Source: Lytechinus pictus (taxonomy: Eukaryota). From it: a DNA stretch of 64,000 nt. The stretch is taken from positions 20,894,001 through 20,958,000 of the forward strand of contig NC_087255.1 in the NCBI RefSeq assembly GCF_037042905.1. Reading direction: 5' to 3'. A program made the position numbers and the translations under genes. The notes beneath the pieces are model-generated. The model was not told where the DNA came from. It saw only the letters and a list, made by a program, of their open reading frames with translations, and made no database searches. Below, piece after piece: positions 55,105 to 64,000 of the stretch; position 1 is the stretch's first letter; each line of letters begins with the position of its first letter.

Positions 55105-58100
55105 TCATGACGACGACGCTGGGAGGCAGTCGGCCAGGATTTCCTTGGTGGTGCTCGGTAGATGGTCGGGAAATACAATGTCAAAGGTGATGAGGAGGTC
55201 GCCACGGCGACTGGGCTGTTTGGGGTACGGGAGTCCCTCGCCCGTCACCCGCTTCCTGGAGTTGGGCTTGATGACTTCTTTGCAGGGGACTGTTATTGTT
55301 CGTCCTTCGATGGTCGGTACTTTCAAGCTGGTCCCTACCAGGGCCTGGAAAATGAAAGAAGAAAAATGCACAAAAAATACAGAAGATTAAAAATTATGTA
55401 AAAAAAGGAAAGATAAGAGTTTTCTTCATCTGAATGAGAGTAAGTTAGGTAGATATACAGGGTGGGAAATATTGTTTATTTGTTATGGGCTATTTCTTTC
55501 AATTTAAGGGCTACTTTTTAGGGGCGACAAGCAAATTATGCAGTAAATCCAAATATCATTATTCTGCCATAGTTAGAATATTGATTTCTAAATAATCTTG
55601 AATATTTTTTGTGATAGATCTTGGGGCGACTCTAAATAGAATGATTGCCCCAAAGCATGCATTTTTTAGGAATATTACGAGTGATTTGAGCTCTCATGAG
55701 TGCGAAATTGCCCATTGCCCTCATGTATTTCTTATCTAAGATACACATGTACATATAAGAATTCTGGTTGTAACTTGAAGATTATTTTATCACTTTGTCA
55801 ATTTGACATGTTTTTAAATCTGTGTCCCGTTGCATAAAAACTGCCATTATGGGATATGAATACTAAATTACCATGGTAACAGGGATACGCAGCCAATCCA
55901 AATTCCAAATTATGTTTCCCAATTCCATGGTAAATTTCCATAATGTCAAAGATAGGAAAGTTTTCATAAGACTAAAGGCACTAGGGAACAAACACACTGC
56001 AACCCATTTATAGTAGAATCACTGAGTACCATATCAAATCAAATACATACAGAGACAAATATGGCAGAAGAAAAGTGAAATGTTTTTTTTCTATCCAATA
56101 ACAGATGGATAAAATCATAACAATTGCTTGCCAAATACTCTGCAAGTTTACAGACATGTATATATTCAAAATGTGGGTGACTAATGGAGATCCCTGATTG
56201 TAAATTCTTAACATTTTGAGAATCCAGAAAGCCAACATGTCTGCTTGCTGAGCTCATCACCAGGCTTACGACTGTCCCCTTTGCTAATCAAAACACAGGG
56301 GATATCACGCACATAGCGGTCTTGTTATTGAATTGTCTGATTTTTCCAGGACGGCCCTCATGCCTCATTACAGAAGTTAACTTATCATTCTTTATAATGG
56401 CTCTTCAGTGATAACCAAGCACAGCTTTCCAAGTAATGAGCATGGTGATTCAGTCAGTGACCCCGTTTTCCCCCTATCATATCCCACAATGCATTCTGCG
56501 GACTTGGCCTGATGAGGCCTGTATTCATTGACATGTAGGTTAAGGTCACGGTTTAAATCGCCTGCAGGAGGTACAAACTGCTGCAGTTTTTACACATTAA
56601 CGTCAAAGATTAAGAACTGGGCTTTATGAGCCAAGTTGATGAAGAGGCGGGCAAGCGGCGCCGCGGCGGCACGGGGGCAGCTAAGTTGATGATGCTACGG
56701 GGTGTCCCACATGACAGCGACCTATAAATACCATGTGACCCCCTGACTGTGACAAATACCAAAGTAGGCCAAGTGTTTGTGAGATGTTAGCTATGAGGCA
56801 GAGAGAGTGGAATGTCTGGCAGCAAGCTCCGCTCGACATTGATGTAGAAACTCAACCAGGAGCAAGCGGCGGCACTAAGTCTGACATCAAAGTCAGTCTC
56901 ATGCAATGAAATATATACTGGTATCGTAATAGGCTTATTTATTATTACAAGTCTTAATCTAAATCTGAAATCTGAACTTAATACAGAAGCAGTGCAAAGG
57001 ATGATGAATGCACTTGTCTATTGTTTAATGATATGGATTCAGCCATCATGAATGGAATTGTTTAGAATGCCAAGATATCCAAGACCATGCAACTACCAAT
57101 CAGGCGTTGTAATAATATGCATTAAATTACTATGCATGTACCATGTACATGAAAGCATTGACCCTCCTCGGTTGCCTGATCTATCAGCAAACTTTATTCA
57201 AGGAAGAGAGAAAATGATTTGATAATCCCCTAATGAACACCAAAAGAATGCATAGCTACCCCACAATGTGAACTGGTGGCTGTTTCATAAAGAAAAATGT
57301 GACTTAGAGTCACGCTAAAATTTCAGTTGCGTACAGTGAATGCACCCCCGCATTGGTCAGATCATGCGCAAAAAAACACGCACTACCGCATAGCCATCAA
57401 TCAGGTTACACGTTTAAGTAACATGTACATATGTACGCACTGACATGAAGCATGGGGCATTGCAAGAAACTTGCGATCAATTACAAGTCTATTTTTAGTC
57501 CCCACATCAATCATATGTCTTGCGATTAATTGTGAATTTGTGATTGATTGTTGATTTGCTTCTTATGTACAACAAGAGTGTTATCCGCCGCTAGATCATT
57601 CTGCTATGGTCCTAGAACACAAATTGTGTTTACTAGGAATAGCGACATCAGCAGTCGCAAGAAATACAAGATGCCCAGCAGGTGATGGGTTCGTTGTTTT
57701 GATTTTGACTCATCAGCTACTAACACTCAGAGGTCATGCTGTTGTGTATCATGTTTTTTTCTGAACGATACCTTTAACCAACATCGGGACAGGGAGTGAC
57801 TGAAGGTACAACTGAACAAGATTTAAAAAGATCATGCCCTTCTGCTTTTGGGAAAATGTACATCTATCCTTGGTACTTAAGTAATCATAGTCATAATTAC
57901 TGCTTTCCAAATTTGATGAATTTTCCTTTTTCTCAACAAAAAGCTAAGCTTATGCTTAAAGGAATGTTTCTAGTTCTAGTACAGAGTAAAAAAATGATAA
58001 GGTCTAGGACTTCTGTTCACATACATGTACATGTAGCATAAAGCTAACACTCAATGCATGCAGTATCTCTCATTTATCAACTAGAATTGGAATCATGCCC

Positions 58101-60642
58101 TGTGCATTTATGGCAGAAAAATCGTGGCCATTAATTTCATTTGTCAGAAATGAATCAATGTATCTGTATACTAAGAATTAGTCAGCCAATCTAATGTGCA
58201 TAGTAACTTAATCAATTAAACTTGAACTTAAAATTGAAAGACCACCAAAACATGAGTAAAATTAAGCCCCCCCCCCCCCCCCCCCGAAAATAGCTGCATC
58301 AACCAAATCAGAAATCAGACACAAAATAATAATCAATAACAGTTTTATATAAAAATTGCCACGACTTTTTTGAGGAACAGAGATACCGGTAAGCAAACAT
58401 AAAAATGAAGAACTTATAAATTTGTTTCTTGTTTTCATTGGATTTTGGTAACCCTTTCCAAAGATGTCTCCAACCTATTCAAATACCTTTTTTAAGAGAT
58501 CTGTACCTTGAAAACTTAATCCAGATGTAATTCCTTTAGAAAATATATATTTAAAATATATTTTCAAAGTGTATTCTAATGCACATGTAGGGTGACCTGG
58601 GACTACATAAAATATGTAATATGCTAGTCCCAGGTCACGCTTCACTATTAAAGAAGTCTAAAATAAAATAAAATAAAGATGAAAATTCTTGGTGACTATA
58701 ACAACTCACTGATTTATCTACATGTAACTTCAAAAAACAATATTTGGGTCAAAGTCAAACACAACTTTAGGAGAAAGAAAAAACCTAGATTGATCAGTGA
58801 AAATTAGAAAATCAGACAAGGAATAACTAAATAAGTTTCATTTGTTAGGAAATGAGATCATTTAGACTATGTAAATTTCAAATTGGCGATTTAGTGAGTG
58901 GATTGTGATTTTATTGTGGTATAAGGACAACTTTTGCATTGTTCATACATACATGTAGATCTGCTAAACTGTCAAGAATTATCGGCTTTCTCCAAAGCCT
59001 AAAGCACTGTTATCTTTAAAGTGGTAATCAAAACAGCATGTTGTTTTATGTCATCATAAAGAATTTTCCTTTTTATATGACTTTTCAGTTATTTTTTAAT
59101 CAGGAAAAATTAGTTGTCAGTTACCTTAATGATAGTACATGTACCATACGTCACAATCATATTCTATGCAGCCAATTTGAAATCTCCAGTAACATTACAA
59201 TACTCAAACCTTTCTTAAAAAATTTTAAGTTCACTCTTTTTTTTATTGTCTGATTTTGATTAATCTGCCTCCACAGTTTGTCTGGCCCTGGATAGGGATT
59301 CCCCTATAATATTTTTTTTTATAGAATCAAACCTACATGTATGGTCAGTTCCCCCATGTCTGCGCGGTCTCCCAAGTCTGCGCACCCGCGTATCTGCGCG
59401 ATTCTAGTAGAAGAAGATACGCAACGAGCACGAACTTTACACATGCAATACATAGACAGGTATTCATAAAAAAATCCGACTCAAAATGGTGAAAAAATAA
59501 TGAATTCAGGGCATTTCATGTGACGGCCTCAAAATACAGCCTTTCTCATCAAAATCTCAGAATCGTGTGCAAAGTGAATGAGTGCGCAGACATGGGGTAC
59601 CATTTTTTTTTTCAATCTGAAAATGACTGCCCCAAGGTTTTTTCAAGAAAATCCTATATTCTCTTTCATTTTTTAATGAGAAATTTGGTATACTTACTCT
59701 CAATAATATAAGGAACATTATTATCCAAAAGATTTTGTGAAATAAGAAGAAATTCATGTTAAATCTTAACTCAAATTGTTAGGTGCGCAGACTTAGGGCC
59801 CACCATCATACATTAAAGCTTGTTAAGATACTTACATCTCTCAGTGGAATTCTTGCTTTGTAGACTAAATTACTCCCATCTCTGTTGAAAACTGAATGTG
59901 GTATGTCTTTGAGGGTGAACACAATATCTGCAGGAGTTTTCTTTGGACCTTGGTCTCCTTCTTTGGGAAATGTGATTTTGGTGCCTTCCTTCCATCCAGG
60001 TTTCACATTGATTTCAAGGATTTTGTCCTCAGTCCTCGTCGTTCGGCCATCTTCATTCAACACTCGACGGTTGATTTTCATTTTCTTTGTGCACCCACGG
60101 AAGATGTCCTCGAGTGTGACCCTTAGGTCATGGTGTACTGGTGGGTCTTGGCGCTTCCTTTGACTGTTGCTTCGCTGTTGGTGGACTCCCGGGAACCCAC
60201 CAAATCCAAAGTCGTCGTCAACGTCCATCGCTTCGGGTTGGCCACCGGCGAAGTTAAAACGAGTGTTCTGCTGGCCGCCCATGCCACCAACATTAAAAAA
60301 CATTTCAAATGGGTTGCTATTTCCAAAGAAGCTTGTGAAGGTTGCGTTTGGATCGCCATGGAATGACCAAGAGTAGTTCTCTCCTTGTTCTCCTTGCGGG
60401 GCACCTGCACCTCCCTTCAGTCCTTCCTCTCCATATTTATCATAAATTTTCTTCTTTTTCTTGTCACTTAAAACTTCATAAGCTTCTGCTATTTCTTTGA
60501 ACTTTTCTTCTGCTCCTTTGCTTTTATTCTTGTCCGGATGATACTTCAGTGCCATCTTCCGATAGCCTTTCTTGATTTCATCATCGGAGGCATCCTTGGA
60601 TACCCCGAGCACCTTGTAATAATCTTTCCCCATCTTGGTCAT
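55105..60642 (-). CDS. DNAJB: DnaJ/Hsp40 class II co-chaperone, DNAJB1/4/5-like (348 aa from the first ATG; 345 aa from MGKDYY at 60633)
   Basis: Exon 1 is 60642-59836 (donor GTAAGT on the minus strand) and exon 2 is 55344-55105 (acceptor TTCCAG), phase 0. The protein has a J domain with HPD ([10 protein letters not shown]...[10 protein letters not shown]...[16 protein letters not shown]), a G/F-rich linker, and C-terminal domains ([49 protein letters not shown]). No zinc finger. The exact paralog cannot be assigned. Confidence 0.95.
59340..59806. mobile_element. MITE in the DnaJ intron
   Basis: Repeated GTCTGCGC motifs at the left end are mirrored by GTGCGCAGAC at about 59582 and 59783; ends ATGGT / ACCAT. 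Confidence 0.55.
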
Positions 60643-61109
60643 AGGTGACGGCTATCTTTGTCTCCTCAACCAGGTATGAAATATTCTTCACCTTCACAAA
60701 GGTAACAAGGAAGCTGTTCGTCCTTAAAATGGCTCCTCTTTAATAAAAAATCTTGAACAGCTGGGAGAACAGGTAGACAATGATTATTGCAAAGTCCTGT
60801 TCGAACGAAACGTTGATCTCAATACCAAATCCAATTCAAAAATCCAACTTTCCAAGACAAGTTCGTCGAAGACGTTGATCGATGTTGCTCAAAATAAGAG
60901 AGAAACAATGTTCTTCACACGTTAGTGTTTGGTAGACAAACCTCGAGATTTTATTACTAGACTGCTCAATCGTTTTACTTGGACTTAAGCAAGCTCTTGA
61001 CGACATTAACGAAAAATTTCTGATTCTTTCGCTTTTCAACCAGCTCATTGACTATCTCCGCAGCTGCGCCGCATAAAGATGATGATGATCCGGCCATGCC
61101 AGAGATAGA

Positions 61110-61175
61110 CCGGCGACGTCACGTAATCCCGTACGAACTCGAATGTACACGAATATTCTCGAAGCCGCTCGAAGC
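61110..61175. promoter_or_regulatory. Heat-shock element array and CRE/ATF-like site upstream of the DnaJ gene
   Basis: In-phase pentamers at 61140-61174 read cGAAt gTACa cGAAt aTTCt cGAAg cCGCt cGAAg, with a perfect 3-unit HSE at 61150-61164. GACGTCA lies at 61115-61121. The patch is CpG-rich and about 500 bp upstream of the ATG. Confidence 0.8.
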
Positions 61176-61358
61176 ATTTGCGATGTAAACAAGGCAAAGA
61201 GGGCGCGCGCGCGCAAACCAGGCTTGAACACTTGCGTATAAGTCGCCAATTTTGGCTATTTGGTTTTTACCCCCTTGAGTTATACACAGGGCTGTCAACA
61301 TTTGGCGTGTTAGTGAGCAACAAGGCTTGTTTCCCGCCACACCGGTTGGGGGGGGGGG

Positions 61359-61391
61359 CATAGAGATATATACTTATAATACATCTCTATG
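61359..61391. mobile_element. 33-bp remnant made only of the two termini of the CATAGAGAT P-like element (probable excision footprint)
   Basis: CATAGAGATATATACT + TATA + ATACATCTCTATG, flanked by G11 and G9 runs that are compatible with a G8 TSD. Confidence 0.7.
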
Positions 61392-62658
61392 GGGGGGGGG
61401 CACCTATTTTCGCCATCCAGAAAACATTGAACAGTGGGAACAGCTCCGGCATTTCAGGCAAATACTACGTTTTGACAATGTTTCCAGTAACTTTTTGCCC
61501 TGTTAGCTGCCGTAAAGCATTAATCGCCCCAGACATCCAGTTATCTTAACCAACTTGAACATGTAAACAAAAATACAACAAATCTCAATACCAAATCCAA
61601 TTCACTAAATCCAATTTTAAATATCCAATTAACGAAAAAAAAAACCTAAGTATGGTATTTGACAGCTACAATTTGTTTTTAATCTTTTAATTTTTTTTTT
61701 AAAGAGAATACTTTCATAATGATTTCGTATACAAATTCACATTTAGGATACAAGCTCGAATATATCCCATATCGTAGTATAATTAATTTTTTTTAAACAA
61801 AATACCTAACAGTTAATAAGTTTCAGAACAGCATTTGAGTGAATAAAAGGAGACTTACCTCCCAAACTTTTATTTCTCACATAGTCAAGCTCACATTGCT
61901 AAATGAAAAAAAAAGTTTACAAAAGTGATAGGCCCTATAGTGCTTTATAGAGAGGATATACCCCTCCCCACCGTTTAATCGTTACCCCCCCCCCCTAAAA
62001 AAAAAAAAAAAAAAAACACGCTAGGGGTCATTATGCCTATAGGTATGATAGTTCGGCATAATCCAACCATGATTGGCCTATAAAATATTGAAAATAAGTT
62101 ACTGATTTGGAAAGGGGTGTAAAATTATAAATAAAGAAGAAATTAAGGACGATACGAAGAAAACCGAAAAATAGGCCTAGATATATATTTATCACTACAA
62201 TCAGCCAAAAATCCCTTATACCCATGTAATTATTATTCATTTATTTCTGTTTTCTTTAGACAGGGTGGTCTCTTCTGTACATAAAAAAACTGATTTTCGA
62301 GAGAGCCCTGTATATTAAACAATCATATACAATGGTGAACAATTACAGAATTAATAAAAAAAAAAACTACATGCAATATAAAAGAAATGAATTTCAAAAG
62401 CATACATATTAAATTAACAATACATAATAGATACATTGAGCGATCGAAATGTAACAGTACAATCATAATATCATTATAATTAAATAATTATCATTATCCA
62501 ACGAGAAGTCGATAACAGTACAGCTAGTAGACAGTAACTCAGATCTACGCATAGATACTGGATACCAAGGATTCATGTACTGGTATATTAAGTCAGTGTG
62601 AAAAGGCCCCGCTCTATTTATAAACACTGAGTAAATTATGCATGCTACGAGTACACAC

Positions 62659-62720
62659 GAGAAGCTTCTCAAACTAGAAGCTTCTCCGCTTTTACCGAAG
62701 CTGGCGCTTGTGCTATAAAA
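62659..62720 (+). promoter_or_regulatory. Hsp70 core promoter: two nGAAnnTTCn heat-shock elements and a TATA box
   Basis: AGAAGCTTCTC at 62660-62670 and 62676-62686; TATAAAA at 62714-62720, about 240 bp upstream of the ATG. Confidence 0.85.
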
Positions 62721-62956
62721 TCAGACTCCTCGCTTGGAGAGTTTCAATTTCAAAACTCGACACCCCGGGCTCGACACCTCAGAGTGCGCACAGAAGATCA
62801 GAGACAGACAGATCATCTCGAATCCTCAAGTTTTTCTTTCTGGATCGTCATTTGCGTTTCAACTGGAGAAACTTTTGAGAAAAGATCGAAGCTTTATTCA
62901 TTTCTACGAACGAATCATCCTTTTCAGGAATCCCTTGTAAACAATTTTTATTTAAC

Positions 62957-64000
62957 ATGGCACCAAGAAAAGCACCAGCGATTGGAATTGATTTGGGTAC
63001 CACTTATTCTTGTGTTGGAGTATTTCAGAATGGAAAGGTGGAGATCATTGCTAACGATCAAGGAAATCGGACCACACCCAGCTATGTCGCCTTCACAGAT
63101 ACAGAAAGATTGATTGGAGATGCAGCTAAGAATCAAGTGGCAATGTAAGTAAATTTTCTGTCTTTGTAATCATACCTTATTGCTTCATTACAATCTAAAG
63201 AGTTTACATGTAAAAGGGACTAAATCCACCTTTTCTCATTCTTCATAAATCTTTTTTTTATTTCTTCAAAATCTATGTTTCATTTCAGGAATTTCTTACA
63301 CTATGATTAAGAGTCATCAATATATGAAACAAAAATGCAATTAAAGATCCCGCAGATATCTTTTATTTTAGGTGATTCTTTATATATTTATCATTTTTAT
63401 GGGCCTTTTTGCATCATGAAAAGCTAACTTCACGTTGTTGCTATATCAGATATATATAATTTTTTGGAGTTGCACTACAGTCAGTTTGATCGATGCACAT
63501 GGTGATGTTTATTTAAACATGCAAAAAACAAATGCCGAATGATAAAAATGGATTTAGTCCCTTTTGCGTGTTAGCTCTTCATAGAATACCGGGTAATGCA
63601 TGTTTCTTGTTATAATTTGATCATAAAATTCAATTGAGGTTTATAAATGGCGACCTTCGATTCAGCCGTCAGCGGCTATCACGGTGACATGTCTCTTGAA
63701 TTCATTTTTTATCACTGACTTAGTAATTCATTCAAACTGAACTTCATATAATCGTCATTACTTTTGCAATATAGTCAAAGTATGTTTTGAACGCAGAATA
63801 TAAGTTAAAACTCAAAATACATGTAAATATCAAAGTGTTGCGGGCCCCCGGGGGCCACTTACATTTTGTGTGAAGTTTAACATTGTTACAGTAATCAAAT
63901 CTTCAATGAGTTTAATCATAAAGAAAACGTTTTTATGTTTGACTACGATTACAAATTAATGAAGTCTGCACAATCTTTTCTCATTATTACAGGAATCCTA
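62957..64000 (+). CDS. hsp70: Cytosolic Hsp70-family chaperone, 5' part (continues beyond the window)
   Basis: Exon 62957-63144 encodes [62 protein letters not shown], including the Hsp70 signature IDLGTTYS. A phase-2 intron 63145-63992 (GTAAGT...TTACAG) splits the ATG codon, and the exon from 63993 restores ...VAMNP. No signal or transit peptide. Confidence 0.96.
63197..63582. mobile_element. MITE in Hsp70 intron 1
   Basis: AAGAGTTTACATGTAAAAGGGACTAAATCCA is mirrored by TGGATTTAGTCCCTTTTGCGTGTTAGCTCTT. Confidence 0.7.

Follow-up and report, generated by a model that had tools for sequence, protein, structure and literature searches.

Two genes of Lytechinus pictus, a DNAJB-type J-protein (Hsp40) gene and an Hsp70 gene, lie head-to-head in the window (the whole 64 kb stretch of DNA analysed here), and HSEs are present close to both. 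The first-pass annotation took the pair to be a co-regulated chaperone/co-chaperone module, and the question raised by this locus is whether the two genes form one regulatory unit or are two heat-shock genes that became adjacent. The part of that claim concerning physical linkage and proximal HSEs at both genes stood up to analysis, but the part concerning a single regulatory unit did not. The arrangement is probably best explained as two independent HSF-type heat-shock genes, each with its own HSEs, that a lineage-specific event among camarodont urchins brought together.

Structure of the linked J-protein and Hsp70 genes

Analysis of the locus revealed DNAJB (minus strand) and Hsp70 (plus strand) as divergent neighbours. 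The Hsp70 start codon is ATG 62957 and lies 2315 bp from the DNAJB start codon if the latter is ATG 60642, or 2324 bp if it is ATG 60633, in agreement with the earlier estimate of about 2.3 kb. The RefSeq DNAJB model starts at ATG 60642 (protein MTKMGKDYY...), and ATG 60633 was the choice of the earlier reader. The gene order in L. pictus is DNAJB(-), Hsp70(+), LINE and TECR(+), and no known RNA families were identified by Rfam in 60600-63000.

The first exon of DNAJB (59836-61055, minus strand) shows continuous RNA coverage with no joints and carries Pfam DnaJ and DnaJ_C domains. Its coding part (59836-60642) comprises the J domain with HPD, the G/F region and CTD I, and its 5'UTR of about 410 nt is unspliced, with the 5' end near 61050-61060; read depth falls to zero past L044 ~1400 and seven reads end in adapter near 61053. 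The intron of about 4.5 kb (55345-59835, minus strand) has its donor, GAT/gtaagt, at 59836/59835, and at this boundary RNA contigs and reads have loose ends (L044 135) running on into exon-2 sequence. The last coding exon (55105-55344, minus strand; acceptor ttccag/GCC) encodes 79 aa, the end of DnaJ_C, followed by a TGA stop. The J domain (PF00226, 4e-29) occupies residues 7-68 with HPD present as KYHPDKN, the DnaJ_C domain (PF01556) was detected in exon 1 (2.3e-24) and exon 2 (2.4e-12), and a Gly/Phe-rich linker is visible in the translation. The CXXCXGXG zinc finger that marks class A was not found in this protein, for which Pfam gives DnaJ and DnaJ_C only. At 100% identity, the best protein match is the L. 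pictus RefSeq entry 'dnaJ homolog subfamily B member 4-like'; the vertebrate DNAJB1/4/5 proteins listed are 57-63% identical. The J domain, linker, DnaJ_C, lack of a zinc finger and protein matches confirm the assignment of the gene to the DNAJB1/4/5 type.

Exon 1 of Hsp70 (62745-63144, plus strand) contains a 5'UTR of about 210 nt and, from ATG 62957, 62 codons plus 2 nt; it matches Pfam HSP70 (5.6e-25) and ends at the donor AT/gtaagt. Its start at 62745 is placed from the TATA box, and the RNA-derived contig begins at 62758 and covers 62758-62996. The sole intron, of 848 bp (63145-63992, plus strand), has gt...ag borders and zero depth in run X1, where both exons are covered. Exon 2 starts at 63993 (63993-64000 in the window, plus strand) and runs past the window to window-equivalent position 65712 (L007:94-1812). 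The gene is thus compact with one intron; the C3 Hsc70-like genes of the same genome have many exons. It encodes an intact 635-aa ORF with all Hsp70 hallmarks, a full NBD and SBD, no organelle signal and the C-terminus GGPTVDEMD, and its best protein match is the RefSeq L. pictus 'heat shock 70 kDa protein IV-like' (99% identity). The C-terminal EEVD was not found in this protein, whose tail is DEMD; related camarodont Hsp70 copies end in EEMD, DEMD or EEVD, and the DEMD tail is a variant of the EEVD motif, not a loss of it. The ORF, the protein match, the HSEs with a TATA box and the single intron argue for a cytosolic inducible-type Hsp70. In the protein tree the linked Hsp70 groups with the Psammechinus 635-aa Hsp70 and falls outside the clade of other Lytechinus/S. 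purpuratus copies, which marks it as an old paralog of camarodonts.

Promoter elements, spacer and transcription

Seven in-phase HSE pentamers were identified at 61140-61174, some 75-120 bp ahead of the DNAJB 5' end as mapped by reads. Their cores are GAA, TAC, GAA, TTC, GAA, CGC and GAA, that is, five perfect and two degenerate units with 18/21 core letters, and a perfect GAAnnTTCnnGAA lies inside the array at 61151. This is the only array of at least five units within the 64 kb window, and when the whole window was shuffled 300 times with dinucleotides preserved, just 3 of the shuffles reached 18/21; the array is as the first-pass annotation described it. A weak TATA-like motif, CTTTATG (61072-61078, minus strand), is located some 20-25 bp before the 5' end of DNAJB and is not conserved in S. 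purpuratus. L. variegatus, S. purpuratus and Diadema have a comparable HSE array, 450-590 bp ahead of their DNAJB start codon. Since Diadema has the array without an Hsp70 within 10 kb, the DNAJB array predates the linkage to Hsp70.

On the Hsp70 side, sequence and repeat searches revealed a tandem 16-bp duplication that yields two AGAAGCTTCT palindromes, at 62660 and 62676, together with an in-phase GAA at 62697 (62654-62700 in all). A TATAAAA box (62714-62720, plus strand) follows and is conserved in L. variegatus. The two HSEs and TATA box claimed for this gene were recovered. Alignment showed the HSE set to be identical in L. variegatus and partly retained in S. purpuratus, and a conserved block upstream of the HSEs (62593-62615, plus strand; GTCAGTGTGAAAAGG...) is common to the linked copy of S. 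purpuratus. A GAAnnTTC pair within 30 bp arises somewhere in 21% of shuffled windows; the pair at Hsp70 carries weight because it is directly upstream of the TATA box and conserved in L. variegatus. HSF binding and heat inducibility of both genes are predicted from these motifs.

Comparison of L. pictus with L. variegatus revealed conservation of only two promoter-proximal blocks, 59813-61311 (92%) and 62561-63030 (85%). The AT-rich spacer between them (61312-62560) is non-conserved and untranscribed (RNA depth about 0); blastn against L. variegatus gave no match over it except at 61412-61476. It holds a dispersed repeat of about 260 bp (62224-62486) with at least 40 genomic copies, and also G-run/C-run inverted repeats. 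The 5' ends of DNAJB (about 61055) and Hsp70 (about 62745-62758) are about 1.7 kb apart with no read coverage between them. A bidirectional promoter, taken as one promoter region with starts less than about 1 kb apart, was not found here; each gene has its own TATA and HSE set.

Depths of DNAJB and Hsp70 were 401:505 in run X1 and 144:16 in X4; in X20/X21 DNAJB stood at about 10-24 and Hsp70 at 0-1.5. From run to run the ratio of the two varied between about 0.8 and more than 10. The contrast between the low Hsp70 depth in X20/X21 and X4 and the high depth in X1 bears only indirectly on heat induction of this gene. Expression of the two genes is uncoupled in the runs sampled, DNAJB being on with Hsp70 nearly silent in X20/X21 and high in X1. 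The contig depth of both genes is higher in X1 than in X4 (study P1), which fits co-induction, and enhancer sharing across 1.6 kb would be compatible with the sequence. These points, together with HSEs at both genes and an intact, expressed Hsp70 in L. pictus, would favour a selected chaperone/co-chaperone module, in which each HSE cluster serves both promoters, by way of an HSF-bound domain common to them or of shared enhancers, induction is matched and the linkage is kept for that reason. We regard such a module as unlikely in view of the distance between the 5' ends, the uncoupled expression, the unconserved, repeat-bearing spacer, the greater age of the DNAJB HSEs and the presence of further inducible Hsp70 copies that lie on a different chromosome (C15, C8) and are not linked to a DNAJB gene.

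The near silence of Hsp70 in X20/X21 and its low level in X4 may also be read as those of a specialised (tissue- or stage-specific) or slowly decaying copy, with relic HSEs and an X1 level that reflects sample type and not stress. The low HSE count (two dimers and one gapped unit), a terminal branch of 0.082 compared with 0.001-0.053 in Lytechinus/Psammechinus relatives and the broken orthologs of two relatives would be in keeping with this. The proposal nevertheless appears rather improbable, for the full-length ORF retains every hallmark, the TATA and HSE layout is kept base-for-base in L. variegatus, and silence without stress is the expected behaviour of an inducible gene.

Distribution of the gene pair among animals

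The head-to-head position and orientation of DNAJB and Hsp70 were found in three camarodonts, L. pictus, L. variegatus and S. purpuratus, with a spacing of about 2.3-2.7 kb. Retention of position, orientation and spacing since the Lytechinus/Strongylocentrotus split could indicate some constraint, and counts in favour of a selected module. In S. purpuratus the arrangement is present on a chromosome scaffold and on a second scaffold, and its Hsp70 is degraded: the ORF stops after residue ~386 or residues 184-335 are deleted, the conserved GTTYS loop has become GTANS and the branch length is 0.29. Orthology of this copy is accepted here from the position, orientation and promoter blocks that it shares with that of L. 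pictus, and not from its protein tree (long branch, NBD only). The L. variegatus assembly has, where the body of Hsp70 should be, DNAJB exon 1 and intron duplicated in inverted orientation, a disruption that may be an assembly artefact.

This suspicious inverted duplication is what might lead one to take the adjacency itself for an assembly artefact. Such an artefact is highly implausible, as the independently assembled genomes of three species and both S. purpuratus scaffolds show the adjacency, the RefSeq protein accessions of L. pictus DNAJB and Hsp70 are consecutive, and RNA contigs match both genes at the locus.

The microsynteny survey proposed in the first-pass annotation gave a divided result: the linked position was recovered in L. 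variegatus and S. purpuratus, but no Hsp70 was found within 10 kb of the DNAJB ortholog in seven other taxa, namely Diadema, Asterias (sea star), Amphiura (brittle star), Anneissia (crinoid), Ptychodera (acorn worm), Branchiostoma (amphioxus) and Argopecten (scallop). The pairing is accordingly not general in animals, in line with the first-pass remark that no such general arrangement was known. A synteny block with both partners intact across related lineages was not found, Hsp70 being disrupted in the L. variegatus assembly and decayed in S. purpuratus, and the decay in S. purpuratus argues against selection for keeping the pair. In Ptychodera, TECR and DNAJB form a head-to-head pair about 430 bp apart; TECR likewise lies divergent on the upstream side of the L. 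pictus J-protein gene, which supports DNAJB1 orthology. Human DNAJB1 and TECR are neighbours as well. The L. pictus locus differs from that of Ptychodera in that Hsp70 intervenes in Lytechinus, and in L. pictus a LINE too.

Full-text searching of the literature turned up no description of Hsp40 and Hsp70 genes paired head-to-head, either in sea urchins or in other animals. A Nematostella preprint was rejected as a precedent, 'head-to-head' there denoting the orientation of HSE subunits and not gene order, and a Plasmodium Hsp70-x/Hsp40 pair was not taken up as an example, since the paper examined does not describe one.

Origin of the arrangement and comparison with known systems

Two independent heat-shock genes would have come together as follows. 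An inducible-type Hsp70 paralog with its own TATA and HSE promoter would have entered the older divergent TECR-DNAJB1 interval, where DNAJB1 would have retained its older proximal HSE array; any heat co-induction would then arise from HSF at the proximal HSEs of each gene and not from a shared bidirectional promoter. We infer a lineage-specific insertion from the decay of the Hsp70 copy in another urchin and from its absence at the site in the remaining animals surveyed; whether Hsp70 was inserted here or lost elsewhere is judged from few outgroups and from flanks of 10 kb. The arrangement is an ordinary, mildly interesting and lineage-specific one, and our analysis suggests that the linkage is incidental.

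In animals, HSPD1 and HSPE1 (Hsp60/Hsp10) share one short bidirectional promoter, in an arrangement that is widely conserved. The sea urchin pair resembles them as head-to-head chaperone and co-chaperone genes, but about 1.7 kb separates its 5' ends and each gene has a TATA and HSE set to itself. Among the taxa checked, only camarodont urchins have the pairing, and one of its partners is dispensable. The bacterial dnaK-dnaJ operon, a single transcript from one strand, likewise links Hsp70 and J-protein genes under one stress regulator; the sea urchin genes differ in lying on opposite strands, having separate transcripts and being of independent origin. Binding of Hsp70 to class B J-proteins is established, and the L. 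pictus pair might be imagined as a functional unit in which the HSE clusters cooperate over 1.6 kb in a shared HSF-bound chromatin domain, matching a DEMD-tailed Hsp70 with a tail-reading class B J-protein as a convergent eukaryotic analogue of dnaK-dnaJ. This proposal is speculative, and we give it little probability.

To our knowledge, linkage of chaperone and co-chaperone genes is rare in animals. The locus offers a natural experiment, as its Hsp70 partner is whole in L. pictus, has decayed in S. purpuratus and is missing beside DNAJB in Diadema, and it cautions that adjacency of two genes with a common regulator need not mean function. L. pictus is a species used for transgenesis, and its intact 2.3 kb divergent Hsp40/Hsp70 control region would suit as a natural test bed for cross-regulation of neighbouring HSF targets.

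A further likeness is to divergent heat-shock pairs such as Drosophila Hsp70Aa/Ab at 87A, which has separate HSE promoters; head-to-head order, about 2 kb between start codons and a proximal HSE cluster for each gene are common to these pairs and the locus described here. The L. pictus genome contains an Hsp70-Hsp70 pair on C15, in which 2.1 kb separates the ATGs and each side has HSE arrays. Unlike the members of Hsp70-Hsp70 pairs, DNAJB and Hsp70 come from different families and are not duplicates of one gene, and no DNA similarity was found between the DNAJB-Hsp70 spacer and the C15 spacer. An 86%-identical Hsp70 is also present on two ENA contigs with short upstream flanks.

Gene models and heat-shock elements of the pair

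Analysis of the window revealed a head-to-head pair of genes, DNAJB (encoding a class-B J-protein) on the minus strand and Hsp70 on the plus strand. Gene models confirmed the start codons that the first-pass annotation had reported as diverging about 2.3 kb apart, and the pair is real with both identities right (Pfam for DNAJB; RefSeq Lytechinus pictus matches of 100% and 99% identity for the two proteins). The first coding exon of DNAJB (59836-60642, or from the ATG at 60633) is separated by a 4.5-kb intron from the last coding exon (55105-55344). The product is 348 amino acids long, or 345 if the second ATG is used; DnaJ and DnaJ_C were the only Pfam domains detected, and the HPD motif and G/F region are both visible in the translation. 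Hsp70 consists of exon 1 (ATG at 62957, end at 63144), a single intron of 848 bp and exon 2, which starts at 63993 and extends outside the window as far as window-equivalent 65712; the Hsp70 product of 635 amino acids ends in GGPTVDEMD.

The seven-pentamer array of heat-shock elements (HSEs) noted near DNAJB is present at 61140-61174. The pentamers are in phase and alternate as an HSE should (cores GAA, TAC, GAA, TTC, GAA, CGC, GAA; 18 of 21 core letters), with a perfect GAAnnTTCnnGAA at 61151. It is the sole array of at least five units in the 64-kb window, and when the 64 kb was shuffled 300 times with dinucleotides preserved, just three shuffles matched its seven-unit score. RNA coverage of DNAJB exon 1, from two contig sets (X1 and X4) and two raw-read runs (X20 and X21) placed on window 59701-65700, is unbroken from the splice donor to about 61050-61060 and shows no joints, so the 5'UTR of about 410 nt is unspliced. 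Depth is zero beyond that point, and seven X21 reads entering adapter near 61053 mark the 5' end, which places the array at about -85 to -120. A weak TATA-like CTTTATG lies about -20 to -25 from this end.

Raw reads over the 5'UTR (window 60700-61050) carry 5-6 differences per read against the reference and an 8-bp deletion appears in the contigs at L044 1143 (L044 being window 59701-65700), indicating that this 5'UTR varies strongly from one individual or haplotype to another. The DNAJB core promoter is bracketed by a 36-nt direct repeat (83% identity, copies 766 bp apart), with one copy within the 5'UTR (60816-60851) and the other upstream of the array (61582-61617).

On the Hsp70 side, the two HSEs and TATA box described earlier were likewise found. 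A tandem 16-bp duplication accounts for the two palindromes, AGAAGCTTCT, at positions 62660 and 62676; an additional in-phase GAA is at 62697 and TATAAAA at 62714-62720. Since 21% of shuffled windows contain at least one pair of GAAnnTTC-type dimers no more than 30 bp apart, the motif count alone is weak evidence; these HSEs gain weight from their location immediately 5' of the TATA box and because L. variegatus conserves them base for base. An X1 contig starts at 62758, about 40 bp past the TATA box, and in X1 both Hsp70 exons are covered while intron bins are empty.

Spacer and expression of the two genes

RNA coverage is essentially nil between about 61060 and 62750 in the two contig sets and two read runs. 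DNAJB and Hsp70 are separate transcription units whose 5' ends lie about 1.7 kb from each other. Their expression is uncoupled in the sampled runs: X20/X21 depth is 10-24 for DNAJB and 0-1.5 for Hsp70, and contig depth is 144 and 16 in X4 and 401 and 505 in X1, respectively. The higher values in X1 than in X4 for both genes, within the same study, are compatible with joint induction, contig depth being a poor measure. Alignment with L. variegatus yielded two blocks, 59813-61311 (92%) and 62561-63030 (85%); the intervening 1.25 kb is unaligned save for 65 bp. The first-pass annotation had proposed a linked, HSF1-co-regulated chaperone/co-chaperone module. Linkage and HSEs on both genes stand; shared regulation is weakened by the separate promoters, unconserved spacer and uncoupled expression.

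The spacer is AT-rich, contains an element of about 260 bp (62224-62486) with at least 40 genomic copies and G-run/C-run inverted repeats, and gave no Rfam family matches. A short palindrome flanked by G-runs (CATAGAGAT...ATCTCTATG) lies at 61348-61400 and a complementary C-run followed by poly-A about 600 bp away at 61977-62020; these paired runs could mark the two termini of a small element of the foldback or MITE-like kind.

Conservation of the pairing in other taxa

L. variegatus shares the head-to-head layout of L. pictus for DNAJB and for the promoter and exon 1 of Hsp70. Most of the Hsp70 body is swapped for an inverted duplicate covering about 4 kb of the adjacent DNAJB gene, namely its exon 1 and intron (L043:10072-15583; GCA_018143015.1, CM031025.1), followed by the last 126 Hsp70 codons only. 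The RefSeq product at this locus is a 223-aa chimera named 'dnaJ homolog subfamily B member 1-like', and no 635-aa-type Hsp70 was annotated among the L. variegatus hits; the disruption is either a true rearrangement or a misassembly. Exon 1 of this Hsp70 also carries an insertion of about 770 bp.

The S. purpuratus DNAJB1 ortholog (P0241) falls in the cluster of the window protein. On a 39.8-Mb scaffold and a 364-kb scaffold alike, an Hsp70 exon 1 lies 2.7 kb upstream of it in head-to-head orientation. Both linked copies are decayed: in one the ORF stops after about residue 386 and the substrate-binding part consists of frameshifted fragments; the other is without residues 184-335 and is annotated at 186 aa. 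Invariant positions are altered, with GTTYS reading GTANS, and the copy sits on a long branch (0.29). Orthology with the L. pictus copy is supported by common promoter blocks, GTCAGTGTGAAAAGG... and the stretch between the second HSE and the TATA box. S. purpuratus can dispense with the Hsp70 partner, and L. variegatus apparently can too.

Beyond these two species, in which the pairing exists with a disrupted or decayed Hsp70, neither gene calls nor tblastn detected Hsp70 within 10 kb of the DNAJB ortholog in the seven taxa surveyed (Diadema antillarum, Asterias amurensis, Amphiura filiformis, Anneissia japonica, Ptychodera flava, a Branchiostoma hybrid and Argopecten irradians). Upstream of DNAJB, L. 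variegatus, S. purpuratus and Diadema each have an HSE array at a comparable distance; its presence in Diadema indicates that HSF control of DNAJB predates the linkage and is independent of it. A selected, cross-regulating module, already weakened by the promoter, spacer and expression results, loses further ground to these older HSEs and the dispensable partner, and we consider it unlikely. DNAJB and Hsp70 are probably independent genes of the HSF type that a lineage-specific insertion brought together. No paper on a DNAJB-Hsp70 head-to-head arrangement was found, and the arrangement is therefore unreported, both genes being already annotated; the pair belongs with known divergent heat-shock gene pairs.

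Origin of the linked Hsp70

About 430 bp separates TECR from DNAJB in Ptychodera, where the two genes are divergent neighbours (L050:1-11576); the L. pictus order is DNAJB(-), Hsp70(+), a LINE-type ORF and TECR(+) (L008:259-9950). TECR-DNAJB1 adjacency is an old deuterostome microsynteny and supports DNAJB1 orthology. In Asterias, TECR is convergent on the opposite side of DNAJB. The ORF between Hsp70 and TECR (994 aa, open; L007:3572-6556, window-equivalent 67472-70456) was judged from its translation to be a non-LTR retrotransposon (endonuclease/reverse-transcriptase); the L. variegatus alignment omits L007 2343-7033, so this insertion appears L. pictus-specific.

In the protein tree a 635-aa Hsp70 from Psammechinus miliaris pairs with the window Hsp70 (support 98/94), and the two lie outside the clade of the Lytechinus C15 pair and all S. 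purpuratus 'IV' copies. By this placement the window gene is an old paralog within the camarodonts rather than a recent Lytechinus duplicate. The other inducible-type L. pictus Hsp70 genes, a head-to-head Hsp70-Hsp70 pair on chromosome C15 and two copies on C8, have no DNAJB neighbour. Under the simplest reading, an Hsp70 copy bringing its promoter along would have been inserted into the TECR-DNAJB1 interval in a camarodont ancestor; L. pictus would have kept it intact, and in S. purpuratus it would have decayed.

The C15 genes (G000:C15:21281001-21291000) have ATGs at 3877(-) and 6002(+) of that locus, 2.1 kb apart, with HSE arrays for each; they are 88-90% identical to the window copy and have orthologs in L. 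variegatus, and their spacer and the one in the window show no similarity at the DNA level. At the C-terminus (L007:1780-1812, window-equivalent about 65680-65712), camarodont inducible copies (P0125-P0134) carry (E/D)EMD, not canonical EEVD: DEMD in the window copy, EEMD in Psammechinus and DEMD or EEMD in S. purpuratus. Some paralogs, and all the listed echinoderm copies that are more distant, retain EEVD or close variants. Because class-B J-proteins and TPR co-chaperones dock on the EEVD tail, the V-to-M change may be of consequence.
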